This document shows, one piece after another, positions 5,301 through 64,000 of a DNA stretch of 64,000 bases. Below the pieces are notes generated by a model. It saw nothing but the letters and a program-made list of their open reading frames with translations. It searched no databases and was not told the origin of the DNA. The DNA lies in the NCBI GenBank assembly GCA_964035545.1, contig OZ037767.1, forward strand, positions 9,434,581 through 9,498,580, read 5' to 3'. Position 1 is the stretch's first letter. Each line of letters starts with the position of its first letter. The translations under genes were made by a program, and so were the position numbers. The stretch is from Bugula neritina (taxonomy: Eukaryota > Animalia > Bryozoa).

Positions 5301-8300
5301 TAGACTAACCAGTCTAGGACCTGCATATGCACATGATTATACCAACAAGCATATGCCAAAATTTTCCAAATTTTGTAAAACAAATATTTATGTCCGACAC
5401 TATGCATGTGGACAAGCACAGAGGTCATATCCTATAGAGTGGTTATGCAAGGGTCAATCTCTTCTCCCCCACTGCTAGACCAGTTTAATAAAATGCACAT
5501 AGTTTCTGACATTGTGAACGCAACAATTAGCTTCTATTGCCCCTTCAACAGACCGCTCTTGCGACTACCCTCACTTGTTGCCGTAACACCAGCCTTCACT
5601 CACTCACTTTTCACTCAATTCTTTGTATTCTTTAGTCAACTTCAACTTGGAGATGAATTGCTCAGCTTTAAAAGAGTCATCTGCATTTCCTAGATTCCTA
5701 TAATGTCGCAATTTGGCTCTGCTCTTTTGAAAACAGCTGAAAATATTCATTAGAAATAAAGACACTTGTAACAAAGTAAATATCTACTTCATTTGAGAAA
5801 TCTTAAATTATTGACAACCAATTCTTAATCTCAATACAACTGCAACCAGTTTAGGAAAACAGGTCCAACTCAGTAGCTCCGAGTCAGTCAGTCTGCTCAG
5901 CTTGAACTCTGTTCAATCCCAGGCCATTTCCTTAGTCAAAAAACCTGATGGGTTTAGGCTGATGCTAGTGGGTGTAGGTACTAGTTCACTGTGAGAATCA
6001 GCAATATAACAGGTTGGAAAAGTACTAGTTGACATTTACCAGTAGTAAGTTTACCTACAACCACTATAGTCAAACTCCCGTTCAACCGGCATCCCAGTTG
6101 GACTGCACTGAACTCAAGACACAGCAACAGATTAAAGTTCTACATTAGTGGAACTAAGCCAGTTGTTTTCACATGGTTCCTAAGATATTAGGTGGGAAAT
6201 AAGGTTTTATTTATCACAACATCACACTAATCACACACTGAATAACTACTACTCACTAGAAAGCAGAAAGGCTGATCTGATTGGGCGGCAGCAGATAAGG
6301 TAGTTCTTTATTCAGTGTCAGATCTTTCTTGTGCTCATAACTTGCACGGAGATCATTTAGTTCTGTACTTTTCAGTGTACTCTAAATCATGCGACAGCAA
6401 AAGAAGATGACTTCTTTGGCATTTACACTACTATATATGCTTTCCTTATAGCATGGTTTATATAAGCAAGGCAGGTCTAAATAATCAAACTGTATAAAAC
6501 TTAACTTTACAGCTAGGCCAACACTAGTCAAACACTTTTAGAATATACTCAACTGGGACTACATTTAGTGTAATTAGTTTTCCAGTAATTTACCTGTACT
6601 GCAAACACCAATATGGGAAGTACCCTTAAATGGTAAAGTGCAATATCAATTCTATAGAAGGACTATCATGATGTTTCCACTTCTTTGAATGCATTTATGG
6701 TTGTGGTATGAATTAATTTATGGCTATGGGTTCATTGATGCAACTGTTCCCAAACATCAATAATAAATCCATTTACATAATGTGAAGCAATGGAAACACA
6801 GTATATAAGGGAACAAGCTAGATGACTCACTTTTTCAATCAGGTTTGAATAGCAGTGATGTGCTTCAGGGGAGAGACAGTTAGGTTTATGACCACTCAGA
6901 ATATCAATAATATTAGTTTCAACATCAGATCGACCTCGGTGGGGAGTCTGAACATGAGTGGGTGACTGCACTTTATCCGCTGTCGCATCTATCACCTTCA
7001 AAGTGATGGCTCTCAGCGTGGAATCTCGTTCCTTCAAGAAAAACACAGTGCCAGTGTGTTGAAATACAATGGCAGTACCTACTACCACAATACCTACTAT
7101 CACAGTGAACACTTTAACAGCACCACAATGCAACCAACCTTAGTAACTTCATATTTATAAACTTTTACAAAAAGCATTTTCATAAACTTTAATATAAAAC
7201 ATTATTTTAATGTTTAGAAAGGAGAGTATTTACCTTCATATGTTGACGGAGCAGCATTCGCTTTGCCTCCAGAATGTCAAGTACAGAGTTTTTTGTTAGA
7301 CTGGCATCAGGTTTGTCTAGCAACAGTCGTATGCTCTTCCTCTGCAATACAAGGCTTTATTATGTAGAGAATTATTCAACTCTAAATACTAACATGGTAG
7401 TAATACTAGATTAACACTAGAGAACTTGTGGTTAGAGAGAATTCTTATTAAATCGAATGAATGGCTCTCAACTAATGGAAAAACAACTGATGCATAGAAT
7501 GCAGTAAATCATGGAACTCTCCTTACATAAACACAAATGACATAGCAAGTTGTCACAGTATCTGCAAGACATCAAGTGGCACTGTGAGACAATGCTGGTC
7601 CTTTTTAATCAGCTAATAAAATTTAAGTTATCAACACAAGTACTAAGGTAATACTCATGTTTTGTTAAATTAAGTAATTGCTGCTAAGACTACCGCAATG
7701 TTTTGCTAGACCTAAATTTAAAAAATGCCAAAAACAAGTTTTGCTCAACTAAGAATTCTTATTACTCCGAGTAATATTTACGGTGCAAGTCAAATTAACC
7801 TAAAATTAATTGCATATAAGAAGGTCTTGCCAGACAGCTTAGTGCTGAAATCTCACTATGGCCAAATAAATTTTCAACATTATTATCATCACCTTATAGT
7901 TGAACTATAGTAGAGGCCAGTTTCAACAAATGAAACTCAATGAAAACCTTCACACAAAACATAAAGCTTTGATAAACTACAAGGTACTAGACAACTATGA
8001 CGTGACATGTATGCTAACTCACCAAAGTAGACATGACTGGGAGAGATACAGCATCAAACACCGGATAACCCAACAGCAACTGATGTAAAAAGCTTTCAGT
8101 CAGACTCTGGGTCACACAGGTCATCTCTATACTGTCTAAAATGAGTGGATGGTGAGGTGATTAGAAACAGTGACTACACACATCGAGTGTATAACTCCTA
8201 CTTATAAACTCAAGGTGTAGCAGCAAAACATATTAATCCTATAACAAAGATAGCCTTCATCCTGATGCAGTCACAAAAAGCACCACCACTGTAACGGCAC

Positions 8301-11300
8301 CAAGTTCCCCCATTCATGATAATGGTATAATTTCATCTATTTTTAGCAAAGTGAATAATGTGAACTCAAAGAGAAGATTGCAAGTGGCCTAATAACAATG
8401 TATTACATAACAATGTATCTGGCAACAACAAAATGATGAGAATGATAATGTTACTAACTAGAGGAGTTTCGAGAGAAAACTCTTGAATTCGCCACAATTG
8501 ATCCCGTTCTATTCTTTCTTGCACTCTCTCTCCAAACTATAGGCTGTGCGTATTCAGAATTATAGATTCTATTTCTTTTTCTTTCTCTGGTACTCTTTCT
8601 TGTTTCAGAGTCATCTACTGATTTCTCGGCAGCGCTTGGATTTTTCTGTTCCATCTGCTGCATATCGTTCATTTTATGCTGACCTGTGAAAGTATAATCT
8701 ACAGAATGAATTTGATAAAACATTGGTGCACCAGTACTCACTCAGATGGGTATAATTACAGAATAATTTTGGTGAAATATTATACAATCTGTCAGGCAAG
8801 AAATAACATATAACAGTAAGTGAATAAATTAACAGTTGCAGCAGTTACTAAAGTCAGCATAGCTTGCAGTTGAATCTCCATCATTTCAACCATAAACTGC
8901 CTTTCACACTTACGAGGCGAAGCGTAACTCTGCACACCTACCTTCTTCAAAATACTTGTTGGTAACAACTCCCTGGTCCTTTCTTTTCTTCAATAACTTG
9001 AGTCGCTGAGTAATACTGTTACCAAACCGTTGAGGGAAATGCTCTTCTCTTAGTTTGGAAATATCATCTAAAGATTCCGAGAAAGAGAGGACAACTCAGT
9101 TAACTGATATGGACTCGCACTCACAGGTAGAGAGATATTTCATTCTAATAGCAGACAAAGGTGCACTAACTAACTCACTCTATTAAGGAGTAGAAGCGGG
9201 GAGACTTACATTTCCTTTTGCTGTAAACATCCGTGTTTTCAGCCGCATCATTGTCATATTCCACCAAGTAGTCATACAGTATTTTGTCTTCTTCCAACGA
9301 CCAACGCATGAACTTCTTCTCTGGGTGCAAACTAGTGTGCCAGCGATCTCTACACGCACTGGAGTTGCGAGTCTTGACATCAGCAGCAATGTAGAGCCAC
9401 CGTCTGCCACTGTCGATTCTGTCACCATACAATGCCACTGCACTCACCAAAGCCTACACAGTGATATTGAAAGGTGACACCAGCTGTGACAGTTGACTGT
9501 ACAAAAACGTAGTAAAATCCACACACCGTGCACTCAGTAGGGGTAACGGGGGCACAACGGGCCGAATTTTGCAATTTTTGCTCTCATTTGTCTGTTTTTC
9601 AAGTTACTAGTTCAATAATCTCTAGTCTTAATGCTGCATGTGTTGTCTATTACAGGTATCAGTTTGCTGTTTCTAGCTCTCTCACAACTTTCAGAATAAC
9701 ATAATTTTCATGATGAAAAAATTGACCCATTATGCCCCGGTACCAGGGTACAATAGGCCACTGGGTGGGACACAACAAATATATTGAAACTTTGCGTATT
9801 TTGTTACATCTGATCTTTATTTATTTAATATTACAAATATATAAAGATACTTTTTTAGATCTACAGCAAAATTTATGTTTTAGCTGTACAGTTTGTGCCA
9901 CTACCGATAGCAGAGGAAGGCAAAATCAAACGCACATAACTCGGTTCTACAGTGCCATTATCATTACTGTTTAAAACTGAAAATGTTTTTTCATTTTCAC
10001 TTCAGATGAATTTTTATCAAAAAAAACTTTAGTAACATGTACTACAAAATTCGGAGTGGACTTTTTTCTATGAACTGTAGCTAAGGTGCATGGCTGAGGT
10101 TTGTGACTGGAGTACGGAAGGGAGAGGGGGGGGGCAGCAAATGAGCAAATCACAGTTTATTTTAGTCAAATACATGTATATTCTCTCAATGATATAATAT
10201 ATAATGAATATCATGACTATCTACTAGTAGCAACAGCAGAGTGTTTTGTATTATGTATAAAATGGCAAAGCTTTAACCTCACCAGACGTATATATTAGGG
10301 GAGCTTCACCTTGTAGTTTGGTAGTCTTACCATGATGTCGTTGATATTTTACAAAAAGGTCAGAAATGGCTATATCTATAGATTTTAGTAACATTTCAAC
10401 CAAATTTTTTGGGCAAACAAACTAATAAGTGATCAGGGTGCGATAATCAGGTGGCCCATTGTACCCCGGTCAGCGTGACACATTGTGCCCCGTGTGGCCA
10501 AATTGAAAATAAATGTGCCTCAAGGAAAATTTATTTTAGAGTTTGCTGTAGAGACAAGCATGGGCAACATTATCAGTAAAATCTAGGCTTGTTGCCTTTT
10601 GGTGTAAAAAGTTATAAAACTTCAACGGCATCTTAAAAAATTTACAAAAAGTAGGTAAAAACAGTTTTTGACTCGCCTTTTCAACACGTATGTTCCGCAA
10701 AGGCTGAATAATTATGTCAATATCTTTTTATGAAAGAAAAATCACAACTCCAAGTCAATAAGTTCTCTCACAATTTGGCTGGTTTTTTGTACCCCTATGA
10801 CCGCTGTGCCCCCGTTACCCCTATACACACACCATGAACAATCTGTATACACACAGTAAGCGCATTGCAGTAACTGCACAAAAGTTATTAACATGGTCAC
10901 TGATATCCAATCCATTGTTTTGTAATTGGTTAAACCCAAATGAAAATTGACATAAAAATAGTAAATTATATTTGTAACTTATTGAACTAAAACAGCACTA
11001 AAAGTTTTGAAATAAACATATACAAATCACAATTACCAACTTTTTTATTTAAATACCGTAAAATGGGGTAACTTTAGCCACTTGGGGTAACTTTGGCCAC
11101 TTTGGAAAAAATGTTTAAAATGTAGCTGGTGCTATATCTATGAAGTCTAAAGATATTTTAATTGTATATATGCACTGACTGCAGATTGGTGCATCCTATT
11201 CCTGAAAAATAATTGATATACTTATTTGCTGCTTCTCGCTGTCAGCCATTTTCAATTTCCTGTTTGACAACAAGATTTTCAGCGCTGTCCAACTTTAATC

Positions 11301-14300
11301 TATTTGAAGGCATTAGAAAAGCCGGACTCATTTTCTTTTTTGTATTAAAGAACTTTGGTAAGTATTTAACCAGGATATTTGTAATTTAGGTAAATAAATT
11401 GAAATCCAAAATTAAAATATGTGTCTTGAATTCACTGTGTACAATTTTTGACGAATTTGGAGTAACTTTGGCCATGACTAAATGGTACTCCAAAGTAGGT
11501 TTCTGGCAGCGCTGCGAATTTTCTGTTACTTCAGACACATAGTACATTACTCTCTAAAGGCACAATCATTTGATTCACCTATACCCAATGCTTTAGTTAT
11601 ATATTTGAAACAACTTAGAGTCCGAAATATGAAATAATTACATGGGGAATTATGCATTTTTGTTCCCAGACAGCAATTTTGTGTTTAATGTTTTTTTTTT
11701 ATATAAGAATTTGACCATGCATTGTAAAATGTATTTTTCAAGACAATTATACTCAGAAAATATTAAAGAAAAGTAATATCTCCAAGATATGGTATATCTG
11801 AGGAGATCATTGGTTTTGCTTTATTCACAAGAATTGGCAGCTGGAAAGTCTTGACAAGAAGTGACTAGAAATATGATATTACCAAAGGAACACTACAAAA
11901 CAGAGCCGCATGAAGACACAAGCTGAAGCCTGGACGCCAAACTGTGTTATCACAAGTAGAGGAGGTAGCCATTGTTGACCATACCTACTACAAAGCTGGC
12001 TCAATGGGGCTTTCCATTAGATAAAACAGACTTTCGAATAATAGTCAAGACCTATTTTGACAAATGTGAGAGAAGAGTACAACATTTCAAAGGCAACTAC
12101 CCTCAAGATCACTGGAGTCTCAGTTTTATGTCAAGACATAAAGATAGCTTGTCTCACAGGTTGTGCCAAAACATAGCACCGGAATGGGCAACAGTTAATT
12201 CTGAAGACAATACGCATTATTTAAAAAATCTACAGACAACTGCTACAGCCTATAGTTTGAAAGGGCATACTTGAATTTAAGATTAAATTCAATGAAATTT
12301 GAACTTGTACAGTGATTTATTCAATGTTGCCAGCAAATCACATGATTTTTTATACATATACAAAAGTTTTTACATTTAATAACAATGTACCTCGAATAAC
12401 TGTGGTTTCAATGCAATAATTACACTATTATAGCTTGCATTTTGTCTAAAATAATTTTTTTTTGTAGTAATGAAGTTGAATAATGTTGTTCTTTAATTTC
12501 TAACTGGCTAAAAAAGCTCCAAGTGCTGCTAACTTTAGCTACATGGAGAATAACGACACCGGCCAAAGTTACCCCGAAAATAGGGTAACTTTGGCCACCT
12601 ACTTTTTTTAATGCCACAGGAGATCTAGCAGTCCCAAACTGCAAATGGTTTTTTCATTTAGTGCATATGTTGATAAGCTTCATTTAGCATCCAAAAATTT
12701 TAAAGAATATTGTAATCCTTTCATATGACACCCAAAATATGTCTCAAAACGGCCAATGTTACCCCATTTTACGGTATAGATATATGTTGAACATTTAATA
12801 ACAGAAAATTTGTAATCTAAGGGCATGGATTACGTTATGAAATAATACCAACAAATCAACTTTAAAAACAAAAATATGTTATTATATTACCTGATCTTCT
12901 TTCTGAGTCCATGGTCTCCTTTTACACATCTCCATGTTTTCCCATCTGCTCTTACACTCATTTGGAGTCATCTCTCCTACTTTCCAGGCAACTGTAACGA
13001 GAACAGGTAAGGCAACTAATAAAATCATAATGGGAAGTATTTAACAACTACCACAGACAGACAGACAGACAGAGCAACGTCAAGTGAACATAGAACCAAC
13101 CCTTGTCCCAGCTGATTACATCCTCTCTACCAATATAGTTGTCTAGGTATTCACAGAGAGTTCTTTCCTTTTCTTGCGTCCAAGGTGCTGTCTCATAGTC
13201 ATTCAGTGCCTGCTGATATCTTTGCAGACAAATGAAGGGCGTTCGATCAGTCTATCAGTAAAACAACCACACTGATACCTTAGCAAGACATACAAACAGG
13301 AGATCTGCCGAGAAGGCATATAATATATATTACTTTGTATGGCACAGTGTATGTTACAGTGTATACTACAGTGTATACTACAATGCATACTACAATGTAT
13401 ACTACAATGTATACTACAGTGTACACTGTAGTATACATTGTAGTATGCATTGTAGTATACACTGGAGTCTACGCTGTAGTATACACTGTAGTATACACAT
13501 TAGTATACATTGTAGTATGCATTGTAGTATACACTGTAGTATACAATGTATACTACAGTGTATACTACAGTGTATACTACAGTGTATACTACAGTGTATA
13601 CTACAGTGTATACTACAGTGTATACTACAGTGTATACTACAGTGTATACTACAGTGTATACTACAGTGTATACTACAGTGTATACTACAGTGTATACTAC
13701 AGTGTATACTACAGTGCTCACACTTGAAGAAACTTACTCCCAACTCATCAGCCACCTGACACCAGCTCTGATGTCCATGTTTTTGAATGAGTTCTTTGAG
13801 TTTCACATCTTCAGAGGCAGACCAGAGACTCCGGTTGATTACTGGGTTGCAGATGTTACGATACAGATTGATGCAGGACTCGGTTGAAAAAGCTCCTTCC
13901 AACTACATCATTGTACATGAATAATACACAATGATAGCTACAGCACATGTATACAGAAACAGTAACTGAAAGAAAGGAGGAAAATGCAGTATGACCATTA
14001 CTTTACGCCGTTTTGTTGTGATACGTATTAGTTGTAAAGCTACTGACTATAGAGTGTGAACTTTAACCAATACATCATCCAATGAACAACATACATTTAA
14101 TTATCATAATATTATACGTAGTATGTATAATATACACTTATAGCATAAAACTAAATGCAGCATGGATAAATTGAAAATATACTAACATACTTATACCACA
14201 GCAAACACCATGATTATTGGTGCAAAGCAAAAATGCTACTTCAATATAATGGCAAGTGAGTCTAACAAGTAGTTTGGTGAAATGTTGACTGACTAAATGT

Positions 14301-17300
14301 GAAAAAATTTTCTATAATAAAGTTTAAGTGAATATGGTGGGAAAATAAAAAACTAAGAATTTAGCCATCAACTTAATTCAAATTATTCATTATTACAAAT
14401 AAATAGTCTATTAATTGCAAAAATGCGTTGAGTTAAAAATTAATTTTCCAGTACAGACAATCACAACTAAATGAAACCTACTCAAAGAGAAAAACAAGAA
14501 ACCTACATGGGTATTAGCTATGATAAGCCAATCAGCATGAGATATAACATCTTCCACAGACACATCACCGAGTTCAAAATGCGACTTCACATTGTCTATA
14601 GTATATAGAATTTCTTTCTGCAAGTAGAGTACACAAGTGTGTAAAATGATGCATAAATGTTACACAGTATATTATGCTATATAATATATATACAGTATAA
14701 CATGTCAAATATACACACAATAGAATAGGTTATATAATACATAAGCACAGTGGAATATTACAGAGAAATATATAAATAAACACAGAGGAATATGCTACAT
14801 ATCCACAAAACACTATATAACAACACTCACGCACACACATATAATATATTGATCAAACCAGCTCTATATATAGAGTGTACAACATGTTATATACATAAGA
14901 GATTATGCTATATATCCACCATACGCTATATAAGCATACACATATATATTCTTCAAACCTGCTCTGGGGTGTTCCTATCTGTGTTCCCTTGTCTCAACTT
15001 TCTCAGTCTAAGATGCAAGTCTCGCAGACACTTTGCTTTCATCTGTTCGTGCAAACAATCCATGAGTATCTCTTCCTGGTATATTTTCCCTGGCAACACA
15101 AGTTGACATTGATATTGAGTAATTGATATTGAGTAGTTGATATTGAGAAGCCGATATTGAGTAGTTGATATTGAGTAGTTGATATTGAGTAGTTGATATT
15201 GAGAAGCTGATATTGAGTAGTTGATATTGAGTAGTTGATATTGTGTAGTTGATATTGAGTAGTTGATATTGAGTAGCTGATATTGAGTAGTTGATTTTGA
15301 GTAGTTGATATTGAGTAGTTGATATTGAGAAGCCGATATTGAGTAGTTGATATTGAGTAGTTGATATTGAGTAGTTGATATTGAGTAGTTGATATTGAGA
15401 AGCTGGTATTGAGTAGTTGATATTGAGTATTTGATATTGAGTAGTTGAGATTGAGTAGTTGATATTGAGTGGTTAATATTGAGTAGTTGATATTGAGTAG
15501 TTGATATTGAGTAGTTGATATTGAGTAGTTGATATTGAATAGTTGATATTGAGAAGTTGATATTGTGTAGTTGATATTGAGTAGTTGATATTGAGTAGTT
15601 GATATTGAGTAGTTGATATTGAGTAGTTGATATTGAGAAGCTGATATTGAGTAGTTGATATTGAGTAGTTTATATTGAGTAGTTGATATTGAGAAGCTGA
15701 TATTGAGTAGTTGATATTGAGTAGTTTATATTGCGTAGTTGATATTGAGAAGCTGATATTGAGTAGTTGATATTGAGAAGCTGATATTGAGTAGTTGATA
15801 TTGAGTAGTTGATATTGAGTATTTGATATTGAGTAGTTGAGATTGAGTAGTTGATATTGAGTGGTTAATATTGAGTAGTTGATATTGAGTAGTTGATATT
15901 GAGTAGTTGATATTGAGTAGTTGATATTGAATAGTTGATATTGAGAAGTTGATATTGTGTAGTTGATATTGAGTAGTTGATATTGAGTAGTTGATATTGA
16001 GTAGTTGATATTGAGTAGTTGATATTGAGAAGCTGATATTGAGTAGTTGATATTGAGTAGTTTATATTGAGTAGTTGATATTGAGAAGCTGATATTGAGT
16101 AGTTGATATTGAGTAGTTTATATTGCGTAGTTGATATTGAGAAGCTGATATTGAGTAGTTGATATTGAGAAGCTGATATTGAGTAGTTGATATTGAGTAG
16201 TTGATATTGAGTAGTTGATATTGAGTAGTTGAGATTGAGTGGTTGATATTGAGTGGTTGATATTGAGTAGTTGATATTGAGTAGTTGATATTGAGTAGTT
16301 GATATTGAATAGTTGATATTGAGAAGTTGATATTGTGTAGTTGATATTGTGTAGTTGATATTGAGCAGTTGATATTGAGTAGTTGATATTGAGTAGTTGA
16401 TATTGAGTAGTTGATATTGTGTAGTTGATATTGAGTAGTTGATATTGAGTAGTTGATATTGAGTAGTTGATATTGAGTAGTTGATATTTATGTTACTTAG
16501 TATCTTTAGAAAGCCACCAATTAGTGCAACAGGCAAGACTTGACAACAAGTTTACAGCATTCAGAACAATAAAACAGTTGAGTGGATAAAATGAGTCACT
16601 TACAAACCCGTGGAGGTTCCAAATGAGGAAATATTTGATCTCTAACAACAGCATTCTCATTCTTAGGAGGTCCACTGCCCCATCGGTCTTTGAAATATGG
16701 ATAGGCAAACACATCTTCTCTTGCTGGTTTCACTCTGCCATTCAGTTGATTGGTCAGCTGCTTTTGGCATTCTTCCTATGAGCAGAATAAGCATGTATAT
16801 TTCATTTGTGCTTAGAGCTAATCAAAATATCAAAGCTATTTAAATAATTTCCACTTGAATTGTAAAAATAGCTGCACCCAAACCTAAACATGTCACACCC
16901 TGTGAGCCCCGAAAACAAAATACAACTTAGTTTAAAAATAACCCAGTCATTAGTGATACTGTTCATAAAAAGTTCCACCTAAGACATCTACAACCAAAAG
17001 TTTGACATGGTTTTGCTACAGCATTAAATAATGTAATGCAGATTTTCCATCTGATGAATTTTCCTAATTTAATCAACAGATTTGCTATTAATTATTTAGC
17101 TAATTTATTTATATTAAAACTTTATTGAATGAATCAGAAAGTTAATTAGTACAAAAGAATAATATTTTCAAGGCTTGGGCCAATATCCAACACAGTCAAC
17201 CAATCTGAAATTTTCTGATATATAGAAATAATTAAAATCTAGCAATCCAACACTTCAACAAAACATTTTCAAGGCTCTGTAGAACACTTTCAAAACATAA

Positions 17301-25389: not shown

Positions 25390-25739
25390 ATGCCTGTGCC
25401 AGAAGGAATAACATAACTGAATAGATGAGTGGTTTACGAGTTTATACTTACCAGTTAATGCACAGCAATGCATAGTTAAATTAAAACGAAAACTATTATT
25501 ACAGAAGTGAATCAATAAACAATAAATTGCACAAAAACATCTGAGTAAAAACTTTTACCAATAAATCAAACTACCTTAAAACTATAGGTGTATAAATATA
25601 ACCTGATAAGTCTTAAGAATACTTGATATAACTTGAATTCGAAAACTTAAAAGTTTGAAAGTATAGTCCTATCATGATCAAGTAATCATATAAGTTGTGA
25701 ACCAATTAGGACTTCTTATATAATAATCATTCACATTAA

Positions 25740-28818: not shown

Positions 28819-28849
28819 GATCAGTATTTATCAACAATTTAATAGCTGG

Positions 28850-30673: not shown

Positions 30674-30707
<34 letters not shown>

Positions 30708-30789
30708 CTATATATAGTTCTATGACTAAAAATTGAAAAATTTTGAAAAAGAGAGTATTTATATTTGGTATTGATACTTTTCTGGATGT

Positions 30790-31710: not shown

Positions 31711-31784
31711 CCACCACCAAACTCTGCACCATTTAAACCATGAACTGAGCTTCATTTCGCTGCTAAACTTTTTACTTCTATCAC

Positions 31785-32680
31785 TGCAGTAATATGTCAA
31801 GTGTAACAGACTGTCACAGTTTATTTTTGTTGTACATACTTATATTTACAATTTTACACAGACTTATTATAGTACGTTAACAGTTATTACAGTAATTAGT
31901 TTCTATTTCTGTTATTCTTATAGAGTATTTTTAACCATAAAATACAGGCTAATGATGAAATGGTTTTTTAAAATGTAGAGTTGTGACCAAATTTTCTGCT
32001 ACGGCTTGTCGAATGTCTACAGATTCCCTGTCAACTGTGTCGTCTGAGAAAATACTTGGCCGTTGAAAAGTTAGTAAATCATGCTGAAGATAGGCAGGGG
32101 ATTTAACTTTTACTATTTCAGATATTTTGCTGAAAATGCAGCAACTATTTACAACTTTTGGAAGAAAAGTGTAATGCATGTCGAAACGTTTGGAGAGTAT
32201 CCTCCATCTTGACTTCAGCCATCCAAAAGCTATTTCTACACACATCCGGGTACTGCTATGATATGTATTGAAGTTTTCTTGTTTATCAGTAAGGTTCCGA
32301 CCCACAAACCCTTTGATGATGTATGGAGATAAAGGGTACCCTGGATCACCTAGCAAGTGCAGTGGGACATCTCTACCTTGAATTAGTTGGTCATTCTGAG
32401 GCATCTTTCTTGATAAAAATTCAAGAAGAAGAGATCTCAAATAAACGGTTGCATCGTGTACAGATTAGGGAGTGTTGCAATATACATCCTGAAACATAAA
32501 ATCGGTGTCCACTACAGCTTGAAACACTAATGAAGACCAGCCTTTCCTACAAATAAAGTCACTCATTCTGTGAGATGGAGCTGTAATGAGGATATGACAG
32601 TCATCAATGGCTCCTATTGCTTGTGGATGGCCATATCTTTGTTCTGTTTGATAGGCGTGTCGTTTAGCATCATCTAGACT
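31785..32680 (-). mobile_element. Inverted second copy of the Harbinger transposase segment
   Basis: Reverse complement of 29407-30303, sharing the stop in YCNTP*SVHD. Confidence 0.92.
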
Positions 32681-35600: not shown

Positions 35601-36127
35601 GAAGTGCGCTCTTTTGAGCAAAAACGTTATTAACAAATAAGTTTAGTGGCTTGTAGCCAAGAGGAAAAAATAAAAAGATGACTAATCACGGCCAGTACTG
35701 AAACGAATTTTTAAACTCGTAGTTTATCTGAATTGCATGTTTGAATGTTTGGATTGTTTTAGAGCCATTTATACAACTTATAATTAGAAAAACATACATG
35801 ATTCTGCTCCATATCTAATATCATGTTGACCTGTTGCTACTACCTTTATATTGTTGTTGGTAGTGACCTTATTTGTATGATCTAACCTGCAGAAGTACAT
35901 TTATGCTCACTGTGATGTCAAAATAATATAAAAAATAGTGTATATCAAGTTTAGTTTTCGTTCAGCTTATGTAAAACAGCATTGAGGTTGATGCTGACTG
36001 ATCTTTACATATGTTTATCAAGTGACTGAGGAAATAAAAATTACATGGAGCGAACAATGAGTGAATTAAAAAATTGAGTGCTGCTATTGTAGTAGCTAAC
36101 GAAGATGGCTCAAGAAACGTTACCAAG

Positions 36128-39100
36128 ATGGCCATATTTGGCATGACTGGTTTAGCGTGTGCATCACTCGCTTCTTACAAGCTCTACAAGTGGCTGGGGA
36201 GAACAAGCATTCCCGTCTCAGATAAGGTTGGAGACAATGACAATGCTCAAAGCAGCAGCGATGAAGCTCCTAAGTCGAATGGTTCGACAACTCAGGCTAA
36301 TGAAGAAAGTACTCCGGTAAGTAGAAAGTTCAGTAGATATCGTCTAAAATCACTATTTTTACCTGTGCCGATTTCACTTGTGCCATATTTAATGGACACT
36401 GTTTCAAGCGTGCAGCAGAAACTCTTGAAAATGTATATAAATAACAGCAACTCTTGCAAAACGACTGCCAAATAATACAACAAATTACAAAAATGTTTTA
36501 CAAGTATAGTGATCTTTGATGTACACAATCATGAGCATGTGATATGATAAGTAAATTCTGAGCATTATAGATATATAGGCTCAACTAAGTTCTAGAATAA
36601 GACTGAAAATCATACCATAACTCAAAATCTAAATGCTTAGTGAAGAAACTATAGCAAAAAAGTTATAGCTTAAGGCTCAGCAATGTCGTAGAAGGTTACT
36701 CCATGCATTGTTAGTCTGGATTACAATGAAAGCTCAATCTATTTTGTAGACATCCAACGCAACCTCTCAGGCTATCAAAGAAAAAGAACATGGCAACGGG
36801 CTTTTTAAGAAAAAACTATACACTCAGGCTCTCAACTCATACCAAAAAGCTTTGGAGCTCTGTCCCAAAGAGGACGTTAAACTGTTAGCCGTTCTACACC
36901 AGAATAGAGCAGCTGTTCACGAGTGCAAGGTAAATCTGTTGTCTCATATTTTGATTATGCCACAAACACTATGCTAGGGTCACTATGTCTGCATTCTATC
37001 TGAATTGAACGCAGAGTAAACTGTCTTGCTTTATATCTTTCATCTATACAAGACAATAGTTACGATTTGCATTTCCGACAGAAAAATTGGAAAACTGCGG
37101 TCGCAGAGTGTACAGAAGCCATAAGGTACGACTCAGCCTACCAAAAAGCATATTCACGAAGAGGAAGAGCCAATTCAGAAATCAGAAAATACAAAGAAGC
37201 GAAGAAAGGTGATAATCAGATGTTTTTTAATAAAGCTATAATCTAGGATAAGAAAAGAGCCACTTTGCCTCGGCGCAGTATTTCACTCTGTAATCTTTAT
37301 GATGTGTCCATGGTGATGTTAAATGTGTCCTAAAAAGATTTAGCAAACCCAGCTATTTCTCAATCCTGGCTGCAATGCATGTATTTTATGTGCTTCTAAA
37401 ATTTATATACTAACCGACTATTGCAGATCTGGCTGTTGGTTATTACCTGCAGAATTCCCCCAGCGAGGCGGCAAAGCAATCTTTAATCCTGGCCGTAGAG
37501 AAAGATGCGGAAACTGCAGTTGTCACCTACATGAAGGTGTGCTTGCAGCAAAATTATTAAAACCTTTTAAACACTTATTATTTCGCACCATGTTTTCTTG
37601 GTTACGTTCTGTTACCAGAGGTGATGAAAATTACCTTCTGTTTAAAATAGGTTTCTATTTTATAGAATCGGCAGCCCGTGCCCATTAGTGCTGAGAACGT
37701 GAGATCATATATGGCCAGCTTTCGGTTCGATCCAGTGAGCACTATCCTCGCAAAATTTTCTGCACCAGTTGAGGGGAACAGGTTAGAGTGACATTTGCTA
37801 ACAAAAACTAAAATATGTCATTTCTTAAGAAAATTCAAAAGCATGTTTTTCAATCACAACGAAAATTGCAAATTTGATAAGCTTCTTTTATTCTATTCAT
37901 GTGTACTCAACACCTATTTAATGCTTTGTAAAAATGTATTGCAAGTTTGTAAACTTTAATAAGGTTATATAACATGCCCTATACATATTTTTGCAAACGC
38001 TTTGTTAGGGTCCCTTTCCAAGTTGCATGTCACCAGTTTGAGGTGAAAGAATACGACGCAGTGCTTCCACATTTAGACCAACAAATGGCACTAGGAGGCA
38101 ACAATGGGTACCTAAAAGAAACGTTGTTACTCAGGGCGACATTCAGGGTCTTAGCTGGCTTGCCCGAAAAAGCCGAATCAGACATCGCCAAGCTCATGAG
38201 CATTAATGGCCTACCACCTAGGGTAGGTGTAACAAGCAGTGTTTGTAGCTCATCAAGAAAATCTTTTGAAATCATTCTTTCCTTTTGAGTTAGTTTATAT
38301 TGTGTTTTTTTTTTTGTTTTTAGTACATGTCTGCCGCACTTTTGCGGAAAGCTCTCTTGGCAATGGCCAAGATTAACACGTATGATGCCTTCCTGATGAT
38401 GGCTGATGCCATCGCGTGTGATCCTAAGAATGGTGATATATATCATCATCGAGGCCAGGTAATGTAAGACCAGGTTTATTGTGGTCGTCTTGCCTTTGCG
38501 CAGTATTTCACACTGTGTCAATTGTGATCTTTGCATGTATATCATACACTTGTCTTAGTAAGCATTGATTAATTTAGCTGATTTTTAATTCCGCCTGCAA
38601 TCATATATAATAGATAAAGTGAGAGTGCATGGTGGAATAGATGATTGAGATGCAGAGCCCAAATGTATTTGTATGTGTGTGCAGGACCAGTATGTCTGGA
38701 CATGCTTTACAGCAGTTAACATTATCTAGAGTTAGAATCCTCTGAAAAATGAAGCTTGAAAACTGTCTTTGCAGTGAGGAAACCCTAGTTACTTTTTACA
38801 GAATCATCTCCTTTGAACTGAAAAATATGAAAACATCCCACGCACATAGTGCAAGTGCAACATATAATTTGCATTAAACATTACCAAATCTAGTTTAATT
38901 AGCCAATTTTCTTCCTTTTCTGACTATAGTCAGTCCTAATTGCTATCTTTGCAGATTAACCTGCTGATGGGAGACATGATAAGCTGCATGGACAATACTG
39001 AAAAAGCCATCCAGTACAACAAGACGGAGGTGCCAGCTCTTGTCTTTCAGCAGAAAATGTGTGGTAAGTCATATTAATCAGTCATGTTTTACTACATCAT

Positions 39101-39627
39101 CCCCTGCCTGAAGTCTACCTCACACTGATAAAATAGGATCTTTCTAAACCCATATAGCACTACAGTCTCCTGTTCTTGCATATACTGATTGTGAATTGGT
39201 GCATTCATGAAACTAGTTAACCGTATTTAGCATTCTCAGGTAAGCTAATGCCAGTAAATTCATGTTGATTATCATAGAGTTGCAAATGGCAATACATGCA
39301 AAGAGAGAGGAGGATCTCAATGATCTTTTGTCGGAGATGAAAAATATGCTGGAAAAACACTTCACTGAGCCCAAAATCTGGGGCCTCTATGCTCAAACGC
39401 TCAGCTCATTAGGCAATGGTGAGAAAGCTCAAGAAGTTTATGACCAGGCTATCGCTTGCTGCCCCAGCCGCCCGACTCTCTACATTCAGGCAGCGTAAGC
39501 ACTATTTATAACCCACGTGGATGAAATTGCCTTTTCAAGTGTTTACTTAAGTGGCACACACTTTTGATGTATATGGATATATATATCTATATATATATCT
39601 ATATATATATATATCTATATATATATA

Positions 39628-39694
<67 letters not shown>

Positions 39695-40373
39695 ATATGT
39701 ACATATATATATATATATGTATAAATATATATATATATATGTTTGCATGAATCTGATGAATTTGTAGTCAACTGCTCATCTCATCGGATAAGGGTTTGGA
39801 GAAAGCCCTCACCTACCTCAACAAGGCTAAAGAAATAGACCCGTACTATGAAAACACATATACTCACCTTGGACATGTATATCTTAAACTGTAAGTATTT
39901 TTTTCATACTAAACTTTTTCCTCTGAAGCTTTGAGCTAACATTTAGTTACTATATAGTAAGTTTTTATTGAAAAACTGCAATGCTCTTTTGACTTGCAAT
40001 ACCTTATTGATTTACTAGAAACTAATTTTCTCCATACCACAATTTTGCATGTCTGCTATCAGCTATGTTTACCTATCTACATTGAAACTGTTTCGCGAGA
40101 GTTCAGTTATGCACACCAATCATCTTGGTAGAGTCATATAAAGTTTTAGTCAGTTATTTTAACAATATTAGTGATCGTCTAATATTTGTTATATACATTG
40201 TGATTTGTAGAGGCAAGATAGATGAAGCTCTGGAGAGCTACCAGAAACTTCTCGAATACAGCAGAAATGCTCCCGACGTTAAAAATGCTATGATGATGGT
40301 TAGCTCTGTCGAAGCTCAGCTAGAGATGAAAAAGAACTTTGCCCTGGAAGTTCCGAACATCTTTCAAAACTAA
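36128..40373 (+). CDS. TOMM70: TOM70-like, copy B (11 exons, apparently intact)
   Basis: Exon-for-exon match to copy A with conserved splice sites and the same stop. I saw no frameshift or nonsense change, and about a dozen amino-acid differences (LYPQ/LYTQ, PVLIS/PVPIS, HST/HFT, QMLIS/QTLSS and others). Confidence 0.88.
39568..39740. repeat. (TA)n microsatellite, expanded relative to copy A
   Basis: ~170 bp here versus ~25 bp at 22505-22530. Confidence 0.95.
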
Positions 40374-40937
40374 TAGCCAGTTCGGCTATCGTGATAGTGT
40401 TTCCTATTGGATCAACTCAAACAATCAAGCCATTGCATAAAACGTTACATGGCTAGTAGCATATGACTTAACTATCAACTTCTACCAACTGGAGTCTAGT
40501 ATATTGTGTAATTGGTCAGCTAACCAGAGTGGTGAAGTGACAGACAGCATTGGGCTTATACCCTAGCTGTTACCCAGCATTACTGGTGATAATGATCATG
40601 CTCAACTTTTCCCAGGTTGACAATGAAAATATGTTTTAGAAATTTTATTGTACTATAAGTATGTGCGCTATTATTAAAATAAATGTTGAAACTTTTAGTT
40701 TCCAAAAACATGGAGTGTAATGAGTGAAAGATAATTGGAGGTTACTTCTAGACTAATATATATTAATATACATGAAATTATTGTGAGATTCCTTTATAAC
40801 CACCTGGTTTATAAGCAAACAAACAAACTTCAAATGTCAAGTTCTATCACTTATATTCAGAAAAAACATGTCAAAACTAGTAGCACTGTGACTATTAATA
40901 CTAGGACTCAACTATTCCCACAGTGACTATTACTACT

Positions 40938-41147
40938 CACGTAACTTTTTAGTCACCATCTGTGTGAGAAAACCCCTCATGGAAAGGATTTTTGTTCTAG
41001 CGGGCCGAGGACTTATTTAAATGAGGGCAGAGAGGCAATTATCACTGGATGCTCCTACTAATGTCACCAATGTCCTTTGTAGGGGTTCAAACCCATGACT
41101 TCGTGATTACTAAGCAAATGCTCTAACCCCTAGAACATGACTGCTCT
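40938..41147 (-). mobile_element. tRNA-derived SINE (family A), duplicated copy
   Basis: Matches 23755-23965. Confidence 0.8.
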
Positions 41148-41270
41148 CTATAGTGATTATTACTACTCTGACTGATACATTTCAATTGTGACTGAACTAA
41201 CGTTACCTGATTCTGTATATTCTTATCCAACAACTCCTTCAAGTTATCAAGGTGCATCCACAGCAACTCA

Positions 41271-41468
41271 TCCCACTCAGTTTTCTCCAGAACTTCACTG
41301 ACCCCCATGCACTCGGTCAGTTAAGGGGCCCCACTCGCCACTCAATTCCCTGAGAGTACTTCAAAAAGACAAGGCCAAAACAGTTTAGAAAATAATTGCC
41401 CCCACTAGGATTCAAACCCGAGACCTCTGACTTGCAAGCACGTGTGCTAACCATTGCACCACGGGACC
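41271..41468 (-). mobile_element. Second tRNA-derived element (SINE family B or tRNA pseudogene)
   Basis: Minus-strand 41468-41398 reads GGTCCCGTGGTGCAATGGTTAGCAC...CTTGCAA...GGGTTTGAATCCTAGTGGGGGC. A/B boxes and D arm are present but the anticodon stem does not pair. Present only in copy 2, at a deletion breakpoint. Confidence 0.65.
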
Positions 41469-42229
41469 ACTGGATAAACTATTAACTACAGATGCAGGAC
41501 TAAGCACTGTTCAAGCACTAACAAGAATGTACCAGCACTTTCACTTTAAAATTTCAAACGTGCTAGCATAGCATGTTGACTACTGAATTTAGCAAAAGTC
41601 TTACCTTGTTGGTGAACACTAGACTGCAGTACAAGCCGTATTTGGTGTATGTCTTCATCTAGTTTTTCACCTTCTAAATCCATCTTCTCATACAAAAAAA
41701 ACAATAAAACTAAATCACTAAGACTAATAGTAATACTAACAGTACTGATAATAGTAAATGTAGTACTAATACTAATAGTAATAGTGACTAATACTAATAC
41801 TAATAGTTATAGTGAAATATTAAGTCTAATACTAATACTAATAGTAATACTAATAGTATTACTAGATAATTCAGTGAGTTTTCAAAAATGAGCAAAATAG
41901 CATAAAAATACATGTCTGGATAAAGGGAAACTATTACTATTTACTATTAGTATTAGTATAAGTATTAGTATTAGTAATAACTAATACTAATAGTAATAGT
42001 AATACTTATACTAATACTAATAGTAATAGTAATACTAATAGTTATAGCAATACTAATATTTAATACTAATAGTAATAGTAATACTAATAGTAATACTAAT
42101 AGTATTACTATTAGTATTAGTATTACTGTAATAGTAACACTTCAAGCTAGTGTTGATAACATTTAATAAATGTTAACTTACTAATACTTAAAAGTTATAA
42201 GATAAAGATTAGGAAGTAGAACTCCTTGG

Positions 42230-42611
42230 GCTTGTTACTTATATGATTATTATAATTATTACTATTCATTCATTTTTGACATTTAATCACGATGAATTCT
42301 CAAGGCTCAAAGTGAAAGTGCATGCACTAGGAAATGCTGCGCGAAAACTACGAATAAAAGCTCTGAAATATAACTAGGGTCTTCTGCTCCCAATTAAAAA
42401 GTTAGCGTAATAAGTCTCCTACTCAACACGAACATTTTACACCATACGACGTCGTGTGAATAAATAGGTCATATTATGCAATCTAATTATTTTAAAAATA
42501 CAAAAAAATACTGTAATTTATATTTTATTTAAAATACACATTTGAATGTAAACTTGGAAAATTATTTATTTGAAGGTCGTGTCCTAACAAAACTGTCAAT
42601 TTCACAAAACA
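42230..42611. promoter_or_regulatory. Probable bidirectional promoter, copy 2 (between the SNAPC4 relic and MRPS30)
   Basis: Homologous to 27140-27515, retains GCGCGAAAA, and lies immediately upstream of the MRPS30 ATG. Confidence 0.55.
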
Positions 42612-45600
42612 ATGGCTTCCTTGGCAAAAGGGTGCAAACTTTTTTTACGTCGTACTCGTAGTCCATCCCCATGTTATGCAGAAAACAAAGTAAAAGCAAG
42701 CTCACAGTTTTGCTATGCTGTACGTCTTATTAGCACTGAATCTGATAGTAACTTGCCACACATAAAGCCAAAATATCCTAAAGGTCAGTAATTTCTCAAC
42801 ACACTCACAGTATGAGTATCAGTATGAGTATGACTTAGACTATGAGATTGAGTATGACTATCTATCACTATGATACTGATTATGGCATTGAATTTGATAC
42901 TTTGGCTATGAGTATGGCTAGGAGTAAGACTAAGAATTACTATAGTATTACTATTAAAACTCCAACTGGCGACTAGCTCTAGGACTAAGAGTAACTGTAA
43001 GACTAAGAGTAAGAGTAGCTGCTGTTGGTATAAAGTAAAACTAAAAGTATGAGTATGACTATCAGTATGAGTATCACTATCAGCATGACTATAACTGTGA
43101 AAATCAATACAAATATGTCTATTAGTAATACTATTAGTTTTTGTAGCCTAGGAGTTGGTCAAGGCAAGGTGTAACTGAAGGTGTTAGTATAAACCGTAAG
43201 ACTTAGACTTGGACTACTACTACTTACTAGTAGTACTCTAGTTTTAGTTATATCATAGCTTCCAACCTTTTTCATGCCATTCCTTTCGTTCACAAATGTG
43301 TACTATTAGTAATTAATTTCTCCCCCAATTTGAAAAGCACATTTTTAATGACTGAGATAATGATCTTGGCAATGATAATGTCAATGTGCTATAAGTGTCT
43401 ATATTTGTATATTATATAGTATTTGATTATGACATTATGATTATGATAATTATTGTAATAATTCAAATTATATTATAATGCAATATTACATATATATGTA
43501 TAAAGCACGAAGCAGTTCAATTATTATTGTAATGGCTGCAACTGATGCTTTTGTGCCAGCTTACTAAGGCTAGTTTTTTTTACCATTTTGAAGGCTTGCA
43601 TTGATTATTTTATGAGAATCCTATCTCACATAAAATTTGATAGCTGGTGCTGAATAGCATCAAAATTCTGAGTGTTTTGTCTGCTATGTGTGGGTAGAGT
43701 TTTTTTGTTGACACCCAGAATTCATCAATGGCAGAGGTTTCTTTATATATTTGTTAACTAGCTCAATGAAATGCTTCTGTAACCCTTCTGTAATCTTATT
43801 ATGTTTAGAATTTTTTTCCTTTTTTAAAACTAGCTCAGGGAAGTACTGTTAAATATCTATTAAAAGTTTAAATGCTCAGAAATGTTTTAAAAAACAATCT
43901 CGAACAGTTTCTTTTCCTAATAATACATTTAGTGTGGAAATTATAACCAATTTTTCTTTTTAATCTTTTTTTTAACACTCGAAAATATATAATGTTTAGA
44001 TTCTGAGCTTTTATTTCCTGTGTTCTACTAAAAACTATCTGTTCAATTTACCAAACTTTTTCTTATTACTTTTATTCAGTTGAAATACAGAAACAATATT
44101 TACAGGCAGCTGGTATAGCTTTAGTTCTAAGAAAGCCTGGAACTGGTTCAAAGATGTAGATGCTATTGATAAGCTCCCTACTATTGAAGAACGACTGTAT
44201 CATAATATTGGCTCTAAATACCAACAGTACTATTTTGATGTAAAGCCATTCCAGCCTGACCCAACTTGTGTTGAATTTACTGAAGAAATAACCAAGTCAT
44301 GCCTAGACTCTAGTGTGAAAGCTGGCCAAACCACAGGTTGGTAAAAGTTAGTTCAGGTCCAACATTGTTTTCATTATATGAATACTTAGGGTTATTTTCA
44401 ATGATTATCATGGGCCACCTTCATAATTGTGTGTCTAATATTTACCTACGGTAGTGGGATGGAGTCAGAAAACTGGATCATAACATAGCGAATTAGTAAT
44501 ATTTTTCATGGTTTCAAAATAATACTAAAGTTAGTGTTCAGCTAACTTAGCTCTCTGCTGGTCGAATATGCAGTTTATTTAATTGATCTTTTAGTCTACT
44601 GCAAGTAAGCTTGTTCAACATATATATGTTTTTCTTTGACATTTGTTCTACAAAACACTTTGAGCTAAGCACTGACAATCAATAATTTCACATATGATAA
44701 TAAATTATTGGAAACTTTCTGCTAGTAATAAATATTTTAGCTGAAAATAGTTTTATATAGCAAAAATTAGAATATTTCATTCATGGATTGCTAAGTTTTA
44801 AATCTATACTTTTTCATGCATGTTGAAAACTGCTTATTACAGATATATAGTGACTAGTTCCCTGCACTCCTCTTCAGACAATGGAGGCTCTTACTTATGT
44901 TCAGTCAGCGGATTAGATCTCAGATAAATGTAGCTTCTTTTTCACAAAAGTCAGCCCAAAGGGGAAAATTATTACAGATCCTATAGAGTGTCTAGCTTAC
45001 AAGCCTCTGAGCACTATTCACCATACTCAATTCCTTCCCTCTGTTAGCTTCAGCAGTTTATAGTAACTACTTAGTCTGCTAGGTGAAAAATGCAAATGGC
45101 TTTTAATCAAATCCTACCAATCTGTTTATGAATAGCCAACCCATGCTATCTGTGGATTTTGTAGACATTGACTCTAGCAAATGGTTATCAATTACTACTG
45201 ATGTTCTTTCTACCATCAATGATGAATGTAAAAACATTGTAAGGTAAGAATTTCCTTTTGGTTTCACACAATCATGACCTCATACACTATGCTCCCATCG
45301 TTAGAATATATTTGTACTGGATAGATTTAAGGTTGTGGTAACATTAACATTGGTTCATCTGATTGAAAGTTCTAATTTCTAATTAACTTTGTGTTTTATA
45401 TGATCTAAAACTATTTTATAGAATTAGAGTTACTAATATACTTCATACAAGCAGCACACTTCACCCTGTGTCTTATTCTCTCTTGAACACCTAGACATAT
45501 TAAGATATAGTGCCAACTCTTTCACCAATCTATTGTCTACCTACAGCTCATGTTAATAATTTGATAATATTAATTCAGAACAATATTGTGATTTTAACTG

Positions 45601-48600
45601 GTCTGTAATCTAGCATCCAATCATAATTGCTCTTTTGCCACATGTAAATAATAAGTCCTGAGCTCGATTTAAAAAACCCTTTCTATCAGGGGTTTTCACA
45701 GTGATAGTGACTATAAACTAGCGTGAGTAGTAATAGTCACTATAGTAATAACTCAGCTGCAGGAATAGCGGAGTTTTTGGAATTTAGCTGATATGAAGTA
45801 TCCATGTCTTCTACTCATTAGAGATGCAGACTTGAGTAGTACTGAAGATGAGCAGAAGAACAGGCGGCACCGTTTACTTCTGGACAGCATCTTGAGACGG
45901 CTGCAGACAGTGCTGTCAGTAGAATGTCCGGACCTTGTTAGTTGTGACACTGAACGAGATGTCAACCTACAAACTCATTGGATTCGAGGGGGTGCTAAAA
46001 CACCTCTTCAATCATTCTGCCAGGTGAGTTCCAGGGCTAAACTCTAGAGCTCAGTATTTAGATGAACGATTCTTTAAGCATCTCCGAGTTGGGGTGACTG
46101 AATGCAGTAGTTTGCGGGTTCTCCAGTTTGAAGTTGGAAGTTTCAATTGTACTCCGTCACCCCCAACTCGGAGCTGTTGAATACAGTCCACTGAATACAG
46201 TCCAGCACTTTTTATTGTGCAAATAAGTGAGTCACAAGATTACAACATTATATTCTAGTATATAGCCTGTGAACACAGCTCTAGTTCACGAGGTTGGTGA
46301 TTCTGTGCGAATACTTTATAGGTAATTGTTAACTGTAAATGCATTGCTTCTCGTGTGTAGGTTGGCTATCGAGGAGGCCCCGTAAGGTACGGTTACAAAC
46401 AGAATACTGAATACCAGTTGAGGAGTCATATGCCCCTGTGCACTGTGAGTAACCCATAGTCACGCCTATCTAGCCTGTGTACCACTTGTTTGTTAGGTGA
46501 ATGTCAACCTTTCATGAATTGATACTAAATACTTAACATGTCCGTGACCTGCAAGTTTTAACTCTTTGCTGTGCAGAACCACCTGAATGGAGTGGAATCT
46601 CATGCCAAGCCACTAGATCCAGTTCCACCAGAGGAAGCTTTGCATGAGTATGCCGACTACCATGAGAGTATCCGCAAGGATCTTAACACAGGTGACTACC
46701 AGACTTGCGGGGGGGGGGGGGGGGGCCTGTTCAACAACCCACTCTGCCATCTACACTGTACTTTCATTGCTTCAAACGGATCCTGCTCGTGTCGGGTGGG
46801 AATGAAAAACCCATTCACATAATGCAAAGCAATGGAAGTGAAGCAATGAAAACGCAGTGCTTGACTGTACAAGATAAACATTTTATTGTTGATGTTTTGC
46901 TCTGTAACTCTTCGGAAAGTTTAGCATTGTAGCTTTAATTTGATCTTAAATTAACACTGATTGTTGTTAAATTTAAAGGTTATTTAGTCACTTACATAGG
47001 AAAGCCATTGGCATCTGGCGAGTGGTTAGAGCACTTGCCTAGTATATCATAGGTTAAAATCATAGTACTCATAATGATGTCAAAAAGGCCTCTGGCCTCT
47101 TGTGCTACTTTGACCATATTACTAGCATAGTCCTTAGCTAACATGCAAATTCTTAGTATCAAGAACTCGCAGGAGTGATTACTCGTCCTTATCTACCATT
47201 GTCATTCTCTGTCTCTAAGTAATAGTGCGCGCTATAAAATAAGTCTTTGTTTGTATTAATTCAGGTGGCTATAATGCTCACAAGAGAGGATTAACCAAGC
47301 ACTGCTACTCCATGCCACACCAACCTGGTTTCATGTACGGGGCACCTGCTGAATTTGTGAACCTCTCTCTGATCATGCCTACAGCCACAAGTGTGTCTCA
47401 AAAGTGGTGGGAAGATCAAATGGATGCGAAATGTCTGGAGGAGTCACTTGTGAGAGCTGGAATAGTTCACTCGTTTGCTACGGCCAATGCTGTAGCTCAC
47501 TATCAAGGTAAAGTTGTGTGCTAGCATTAGCCATCAGTACATTGCATCTTCTCCGCCTGCTTGTTTTGTAAAATACATTGTCAGCATTGTAATGTGATGA
47601 GTTTTCCAGGCTATGATATGCACCACGATCTAAGCTCTCCAATACTCACACAGACCTTAGTGTTTGATAAAAACACCTTCACTCTGATAACCTACCAGTT
47701 AAATACTCTCCGGCTGTTTGTACACGACGTGGACAACTGCAAGTATAATGCGTACAGTCACACTCGTCCTGTGCAGCTCTACCAAAGTATCACAGATGAT
47801 GGAACTGTAAGTTTCTTCTAATTAAACTTGAGGCTTTTGTCGAAAAAAATATTAGTTTTGCTTTTTTGCCCATTGATTCAATTTTTCAATCTGTTAGAAA
47901 AACCTTTACGACATTGTGGTAAATTTAAAGACAGCTGTGAGCAGAGACATTGTTGTGTAAAGCTGTCTGGTCAATATTGTGTTGATCAACCTCACTAGCT
48001 CAAGAGCAAAGTGTTCAAGTATGTGGCATATAATGTAACTCTCTACCTACCAGGTTTAACTTTAACTGTGGCTAGAAACTCAAGATATTTCTCTCAACAA
48101 ATTATAGACTCTCTTTATTGTTACAGATAGTTGGCTTCAACCCTCAGTGCATCAAGATGATAGGAGAGTGTATGTTGGCTAGCCTCGCACAAGGAGTTGC
48201 CGTAAATCCTCATCTAAATCAACAACAGATGAAAACTCCCTCTAGTGGTGACATTTTTCCGTATCTTCCAAAGTATCCTAGATTCTCAGACATCCCAGAG
48301 CTGCACCCTGGTTCAGCTTCCATACCCACATTCATTAGGTACAGTGTATGATAGTAATTACTCTCTCTAGCTATCAGTGTGTAGACTGTGAACACAGTGG
48401 TTGGATCGTGAGCTTTGTGGTGGGATTGTTACATGCTTCGCATGTACTTTTCATTTGATGTATGGAAACAGTTGCACCACAACCATAAGTCAAAGCAAAC
48501 TGCAACCACAAGTTCATTCTTACATCTGTACAGATTCATTGGAAGCAATAGAAATGCAGTGATATTGTATGTTCTGAAATCTATGCTGTATATCATAAAC

Positions 48601-53249: not shown

Positions 53250-63999
<10,750 letters not shown>

Positions 64000-64000
64000 A

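Follow-up and report, generated by a model that had tools for sequence, protein, structure and literature searches.

The window analysed here is a 64,000-bp stretch of the 216-Mb Bugula neritina assembly, which has chromosome-scale contigs (C3:9434581-9498580; the window contains no N). It carries two direct copies of a unit derived from a head-to-head gene pair, SNAPC4 and MRPS30, together with a TOM70 gene located in SNAPC4 intron 3. This arrangement probably goes back to an old partial tandem duplication that was followed by reciprocal decay of the truncated genes and by later conversion or re-copying of part of the unit.

Comparison of the window with itself by BLAST revealed direct colinear matches running from 7248/32683 through to 28818/45864, with identities of 71–95% over kilobases, far above chance. 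Exon models were then used to follow the gene content of the two copies. SNAPC4 is open in copy 1 only, where no stops were found across 21 exon models, while MRPS30 is open in copy 2 only. TOM70 is the only intact gene present twice in the unit. The net content of the locus is one open SNAPC4, one open MRPS30 and two open TOM70 copies. A preliminary description of the window had proposed a tandem duplication with reciprocal decay, copy 1 keeping SNAPC4 and copy 2 keeping MRPS30, and with TOM70 as the sole gene open in both copies. The self-comparison, the exon models and the 12-exon TOM70 models bore out each of these points.

The redundant partial copies are clearly degraded. In copy 1, MRPS30 exon 1 is frameshifted and lacks an ATG, exons 2 and 3 are gone, and part of exon 4 remains. 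Copy 2, which carries several large internal deletions, retains SNAPC4 exon 1, exons 11 and 12 and fragments of exons 3, 10 and 14, with exons 2, 4–9 and 13 missing; exon 12 is frameshifted by deletions of 32 nt and 1 nt and contains a stop. An insertion of ~380 bp (33839-34218) lies within these remnants. Remnant exons 11, 12 and 14 retain their acceptors, and exon 1 (41683-41605), which adjoins the MRPS30 promoter, has an intact ATG and donor site. The pN/pS ratio of the remnant exons (0.25) hints that the copy-2 SNAPC4 may have been constrained for a time. No further match to a second SNAPC4 3′ region was found anywhere in the genome.

The two TOM70 genes of the window, TOM70-A in copy 1 and TOM70-B in copy 2, have canonical splice sites and no stops. 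Within scored codons they differ at 34 nucleotides and 13 amino acids (98% identity). With pS of 0.052 and pN of 0.0095 (ratio 0.18, p 2e-6), TOM70-B is evidently under purifying selection.

Evidence for two ages within the duplicated unit

Non-coding divergence varies along the unit. In the SNAPC4/TOM70 part, between exons 14 and 3 of SNAPC4, it amounts to 6.0% (324/5436), compared to 25.6% (193/754) in the promoter region and MRPS30 introns (p 8e-55). Within the former part, TOM70 introns 2–7 diverged by 2.9% and the region from intron 8 to the 3′ flank by 6.7% (p 3e-6).

Metagenome contigs 83–89% identical to the window genome were used as a sister lineage; they carry the label AY690838, an accession cited in bryozoan literature, among it the paper on the Bugula neritina mitogenome. 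Such contigs from different samples differ by 0.1–0.5% over long matches. We infer that the window genome belongs to the B. neritina species complex and that the contigs come from a sibling lineage. Three-way comparison of MRPS30 introns assigned 58 unique changes to the remnant, 20 to the functional copy and 24 to the sister sequence. The ratio of functional to sister changes does not depend on the rate at which the remnant evolves. Had the MRPS30 part split recently, 14–23% of non-remnant changes would be expected in the functional copy, and 20/44 were observed (p 8e-7 to 9e-4). In the TOM70 core, the unique changes number 44 in A, 61 in B and 363 in the sister copy, and three DNA trees placed TOM70-A and TOM70-B in one group to the exclusion of the sister copy (100/100, 96/96 and 94/90). 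There is thus moderately strong evidence that the split from the sister lineage came after the MRPS30 remnant had formed and before TOM70-A and TOM70-B separated. Since the two parts of the unit fall on opposite sides of this split, the gene pair would have been broken up before the part with TOM70 was copied or homogenised. The single duplication event assumed in the preliminary description does not agree with this pattern. A ~210-bp dispersed repeat located at the matching site in both copies must have been inserted before the younger copying step.

Origin of the nesting and the TOM70 family

The genome contains four intact and four broken TOM70 copies, two intact and four broken ones being located on contig C1. 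The intact C1 genes, at 2.625 Mb and 6.511 Mb, have 12/12 exons in frame and canonical splice sites. Two partial copies adjoin the 6.511-Mb gene, and two rearranged copies at 10.49–10.50 Mb form a 96.6% identical tandem pair with inversions. Judged from open reading frames only, the C1 copies are apparently intergenic. Proteins encoded by intact genes are 74–83% identical between loci, with dN/dS of 0.13–0.21 (74–98% identity among all four). The 6.51-Mb gene has an ortholog in the sister lineage with the same upstream neighbour (contig L028). Most animals have one TOMM70; in contrast, four intact and four broken copies are present here, and four intact genes are unusual for one animal. By this count, the tandem duplication raised the number of intact TOM70 genes from three to four rather than from one to two. 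The dosage change put forward in the preliminary description, read as a doubling, is not supported, and any dosage argument built on a step from three to four copies is weak.

Nearly all of SNAPC4 intron 3 (16776-24023), the host of TOM70-A, is filled by a cassette common to the C1 copies; outside the cassette, the intron consists of ~165 bp and one repeat. The flanks of the cassette are in permuted order. The segment upstream of TOM70-A, 16809-17070, matches sequence located 3′ of the gene at C1:6.52 Mb: it corresponds to positions 20591-20860 of the C1 locus, and window positions 23584-23679 correspond to 20136-20240. Such an order fits either a circle or a looped-out unit of a tandem array. 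Junction microhomologies of the nesting step were not legible, the ends being decayed (75–80% identity). The possibility that the flank block is a transposon was considered and rejected, as it matches TOM70 clusters only.

The ancestral arrangement was assessed with one contig of a distant relative, L029, which has 40–67% amino acid identity to the window genes. On this contig MRPS30 exons 1–2 are head-to-head with SNAPC4 exons 3–5, and SNAPC4 intron 3 is 665 bp long and contains no TOM70. The SNAPC4-MRPS30 pair is evidently old and was split by the duplication, while nesting of TOM70 in SNAPC4 intron 3 is most simply read as derived, a later gain. Of the ancestor proposed in the preliminary description, with SNAPC4 already hosting TOM70 and paired with MRPS30, the pairing is recovered in the distant relative and the nesting is not. 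The associated claim of un-nesting does not fit what was found: TOM70-A is still nested and only its paralog B has lost its coding host, the nesting itself looks derived, and TOM70-B, yet, lies downstream of a SNAPC4 exon 1 remnant with ATG and donor. Antisense read-through from this exon across TOM70-B is possible.

A comparison of TOM70 exons 3–8 (19722-21427) with the sister copy (L021:1853-3557) gave pS of 0.38–0.72 and pN of 0.08–0.14. The introns between these exons differ by 10–16%, exons 9–11 have pS of ~0.2, and both branches are long. One option is that the exons of an old paralog were kept while the introns were converted. Conversion of the sister exons 3–8 by the C1 paralogs was also considered and was unsupported by the comparison. 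When sister contigs were extended across the TOM70 flanks, nothing longer was obtained.

Edges of the unit, probable history and alternatives

According to the preliminary description, the duplication broke within exon 14 of SNAPC4 and within exon 4 of MRPS30. Positions 7248 and 45864 do fall in these exons; however, they are only bounds of the surviving homology. Between the copies, both edges run into truncated, decayed Harbinger-like relics. The left relic starts immediately after the MRPS30 exon 4 remnant and has no recognisable end, and the right one breaks off within its transposase, flush with the SNAPC4 exon 14 remnant. The relics form an inverted pair with 89% identity. Only three matches to this sequence were found in the genome, the sole further copy being a partial one at C3:4.39 Mb, and with both relics truncated and the only other copy also partial, Harbinger termini could not be defined at the unit edges. 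The breakpoints are thus probably deletion edges that give a minimum size of the unit. The first relic has an apparent intron at ~29044-29255. The high-copy repeat between the relics is presumably Penelope-like, judging from its open reading frames; Pfam gave no confirmation.

The following history would account for these observations. The starting point would be the old head-to-head SNAPC4-MRPS30 pair that is seen in the distant relative. A copy from an already duplicating TOM70 family would then have entered the third intron of SNAPC4, probably in the form of a circle or of one unit looped out from a tandem array, with C1 as the putative source. An old tandem duplication would have included, as a minimum, the promoter common to both genes along with the start of SNAPC4 and the MRPS30 5′ part, after which each gene was left with one promoter copy while its superfluous partial copy decayed. 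At a later stage, re-copying from copy 1, or homogenisation with it, would have renewed the SNAPC4/TOM70 part of copy 2, presumably through unequal exchange or gene conversion over long tracts; the TOM70 core would have been affected last. Deletions that followed would have taken away the majority of SNAPC4 exons and cut back the two ends to the Harbinger relics. Survival of TOM70-B may be attributed to its own upstream region and to purifying selection.

Several points weigh against this history. The test for the old stratum relies on ~310 columns, partly of low complexity, and with intron 3 alone the difference between remnant and sister reaches only p 0.10. An old duplication predicts an MRPS30 remnant in the sister lineage, and none was demonstrated there. 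The single distant outgroup contig is compatible with loss of TOM70 from the intron in that lineage, and the TOM70 trees are unrooted, so that the direction from C1 to C3 is not fixed. Finally, an old large duplication followed by conversion would be indistinguishable from an old small duplication followed by a second, one-sided copying.

It is unlikely that a single tandem duplication took place, with SNAPC4 exon 14 and MRPS30 exon 4 as its true breakpoints and the uneven divergence a product of local mutation rates or of misalignment in repeat-rich stretches. This reading is consistent with colinear homology stopping exactly at these breakpoints and with the abundance of TAG/TAC-type simple repeats in the right-hand part, which could inflate divergence; in addition, the contrast between the two parts is smaller for the exon remnants (5–11% vs 13%) than for the introns. 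However, the functional-to-sister ratio of 20:24 is insensitive to the rate of the remnant and rejects a young age, the cut in mid-transposase at 32682 and the start at 28819 with no recognisable terminus imply that deletions shaped both edges, and the pN/pS of the SNAPC4 remnant exons gives a further hint against this reading. Unequal crossing-over between chromosomes of diverged Bugula lineages, through hybridisation or deep polymorphism, would make the 26% a measure of lineage divergence. Sibling species of B. neritina show 88.5–91.8% COI identity and their hybridisation is unsettled (PMC4183541), and the fact that TOM70 exons 3–8 are far more diverged from the sister copy than their introns might be a sign of mixed ancestry. 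But the 26% exceeds the 17–18% that separates the genome from the sister lineage in the same columns, and the donor would have to be a more distant species, which makes this explanation quite unlikely.

It is very improbable that two haplotypes were joined in tandem by the assembly, and the locus is probably a tandem duplication rather than such a false join. TOM70-A and TOM70-B are 3–7% apart, which is within reach of haplotypes of some marine invertebrates. However, one haplotype would then have no working SNAPC4 and the other no working MRPS30, although both genes are essential and single-copy, and divergence in the right-hand part of the unit exceeds that of the sister lineage, whose contigs from different samples are themselves nearly identical over long matches. 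The 3.9-kb junction between the copies is gap-free and has no match elsewhere in the genome in the same form.

Reciprocal pseudogenisation and interlocus gene conversion after a partial tandem duplication are known processes, and the mechanisms considered here are ordinary, none of them new. The locus shares with such cases adjacent direct copies, decay of genes cut at the ends, survival in two copies of the gene included in the unit, and a mosaic of ages; incomplete gene duplication with conversion is the subject of PMC5345166. It differs in that the survivor is an internal nested gene and that the truncated pair is bidirectional, each gene having its own copy of the promoter region. For nested genes, PMC8467205 gives 56 lineage-specific nestings vs 4 un-nestings among human/mouse 1:1 orthologs, and states, citing Assis et al., that internal genes usually come from young duplicates inserting into introns. 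The opposite-strand internal gene is a shared feature, and insertion of a young duplicate fits the derived nesting seen here. In contrast to un-nesting in the sense of that paper, the nested copy persists and it is a paralog that lies in a dead host; and while most internal genes are short and intronless, TOM70 has 11 introns. Duplication through circular DNA was described for tilapia vasa (PMC3245284) and human segmental duplications (PMC7450558). The permuted flank order between the C1:6.52 Mb array and the intron 3 cassette is the shared feature, but the window lacks ~350 bp of the C1 spacer, and the order is explained equally well by a unit excised from a tandem array.

The locus represents a concrete way for a nested gene to gain a copy outside a working host, un-nesting being rarely recorded in animals. 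No literature on un-nesting by tandem duplication or on expansion of TOM70 in animals was found, within an incomplete literature coverage. If both genes are expressed, comparison of nested TOM70-A with the nearly identical TOM70-B, whose host is dead, would be a direct test of the constraint that nesting places on expression. The family of four intact TOM70 genes may be a more interesting lead than the locus itself. A more speculative and unlikely reading is that the four paralogs, of which at least two lineages also occur in the sibling lineage, act as functionally divided mitochondrial import receptors. The locus would then record a round trip, in which TOM70 entered the intron from an array or circle and left it through tandem duplication and decay of the host. 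Expression of B would differ from that of A, B being freed from antisense SNAPC4 transcription, and the two would form a natural pair for testing transcriptional interference between nested genes.

Gene identities and other features of the window

Spliced gene models were searched exon by exon, and the gene identities given in the preliminary description were upheld by Pfam and PDB matches. SNAPC4 was identified by tandem Myb repeats (Pfam) and by a match of exon 10 to SNAPC4 in PDB (E 6e-10), where c-Myb outscores SNAPC4 for this single exon; a search with exon 4 gave no match. An open frame across intron 2 (24196-24628) requires a GC donor. Large minisatellites are present in SNAPC4 introns at 15109-16488 (14-mer x 99), 13326-13716 (12-mer x 31) and 4343-4544 (15-mer x 13). 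In one sister contig (L032:960-975), SNAPC4 exon 10 has lost 46 nt, with a frameshift, whereas the near-identical contig L033 has no such deletion; candidate explanations are an assembly slip, a null allele and a second, broken copy of SNAPC4.

MRPS30 matches PF07147 at 39.5 bits (curated cut-off 25), and its ortholog on sister contig L030 is 92–100% identical at the amino acid level. A PDB search with exon 7 gave no match. A probable last exon is predicted to extend to ~48350. The other PF07147 match in the genome, on C4, is probably the paralog mL37.

TOM70 exon 7 matches human TOM70 alone in PDB (E 0.005), human TOM70 is the best PDB match of exon 8 (E 0.013), and exon 3 aligned over its full length to TOM70 residues 110-164 (E 8e-7). 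Exon 2 encodes a hydrophobic stretch with a basic flank that is anchor-like by eye. A TPR clamp and TOM70-specific core exons are the features shared with TOM70/TOMM70 and with the yeast paralog pair Tom70-Tom71, the putative N-terminal anchor being a further candidate. Matches of single exons to TIGR00990 fall below the cut-off in the exon-wise search, and a single TPR exon recovered only generic TPR proteins from a representative set. A genome-wide search with TIGR00990 revealed no verified better TOM70 candidate. The best matches in the assembly, C103:25776-26744 (on a small contig) and C4:6186525-6186737, lie outside the family described above and are probably other clamp-TPR proteins. A start of TOM70 at the ATG at 18607 was rejected, since it is out of frame with stops throughout; a 40-nt upstream exon 1 fits instead.

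Table 1. Coordinates of features of the duplicated locus and of related TOM70 copies
Feature	Position	Strand	Basis or remark
SNAPC4, intact, 21 exons, 1188 aa, GC-AG intron 2	2220..25389	-	frames, splice sites, Myb repeats
Copy 1 of duplicated unit (surviving homology)	7248..28818	.	self-BLAST
TOM70 cassette common to C1 copies	16809..23679	+	fills nearly all of SNAPC4 intron 3
TOM70-A, 12 coding exons, 585 aa, open, antisense in SNAPC4 intron 3	17598..23176	+	exon models
~210-bp dispersed repeat	23754..23964 (copy 1), 40937-41146 (copy 2)	.	matching position in each copy
Promoter region of copy 1 with remnant of MRPS30 exon 1 (ATG lost, indels)	27030..27691	+	~26% diverged non-coding
Remnant of MRPS30 intron 3 and exon 4, where copy-1 homology ends	28535..28818	+	self-BLAST, exon models
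Decayed Harbinger/HARBI1-like transposase with stops	28819..30303	+	begins directly at homology edge
High-copy dispersed repeat between Harbinger relics	30674..31710	-	>40 copies at 82-88%
Second Harbinger-like relic, inverted	31785..32682	-	DDE_Tnp_4, E 3e-16
Copy 2 of duplicated unit (surviving homology)	32683..45864	.	self-BLAST
SNAPC4 remnants (exons 11 and 12, parts of exons 10 and 14)	32683..34489	-	self-BLAST, exon models
TOM70-B, 12 coding exons, 585 aa, open	35040..40373	+	exon models
SNAPC4 remnants: exon 3 3′ part (41207-41269), exon 1 (41605-41683)	41207..41683	-	exon models
MRPS30 (mL65), intact, exons 1-8 open	42612..47806	+	exon models, PF07147
Six further TOM70 copies, same introns	C1:2625223-2631400, C1:6511008-6531391, C1:10493700-10506700		

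At the right end of the window (57824-64000, plus strand), exons of a two-domain AAA ATPase were found, which, by motif reading alone, we take to be NVL/VCP-like.

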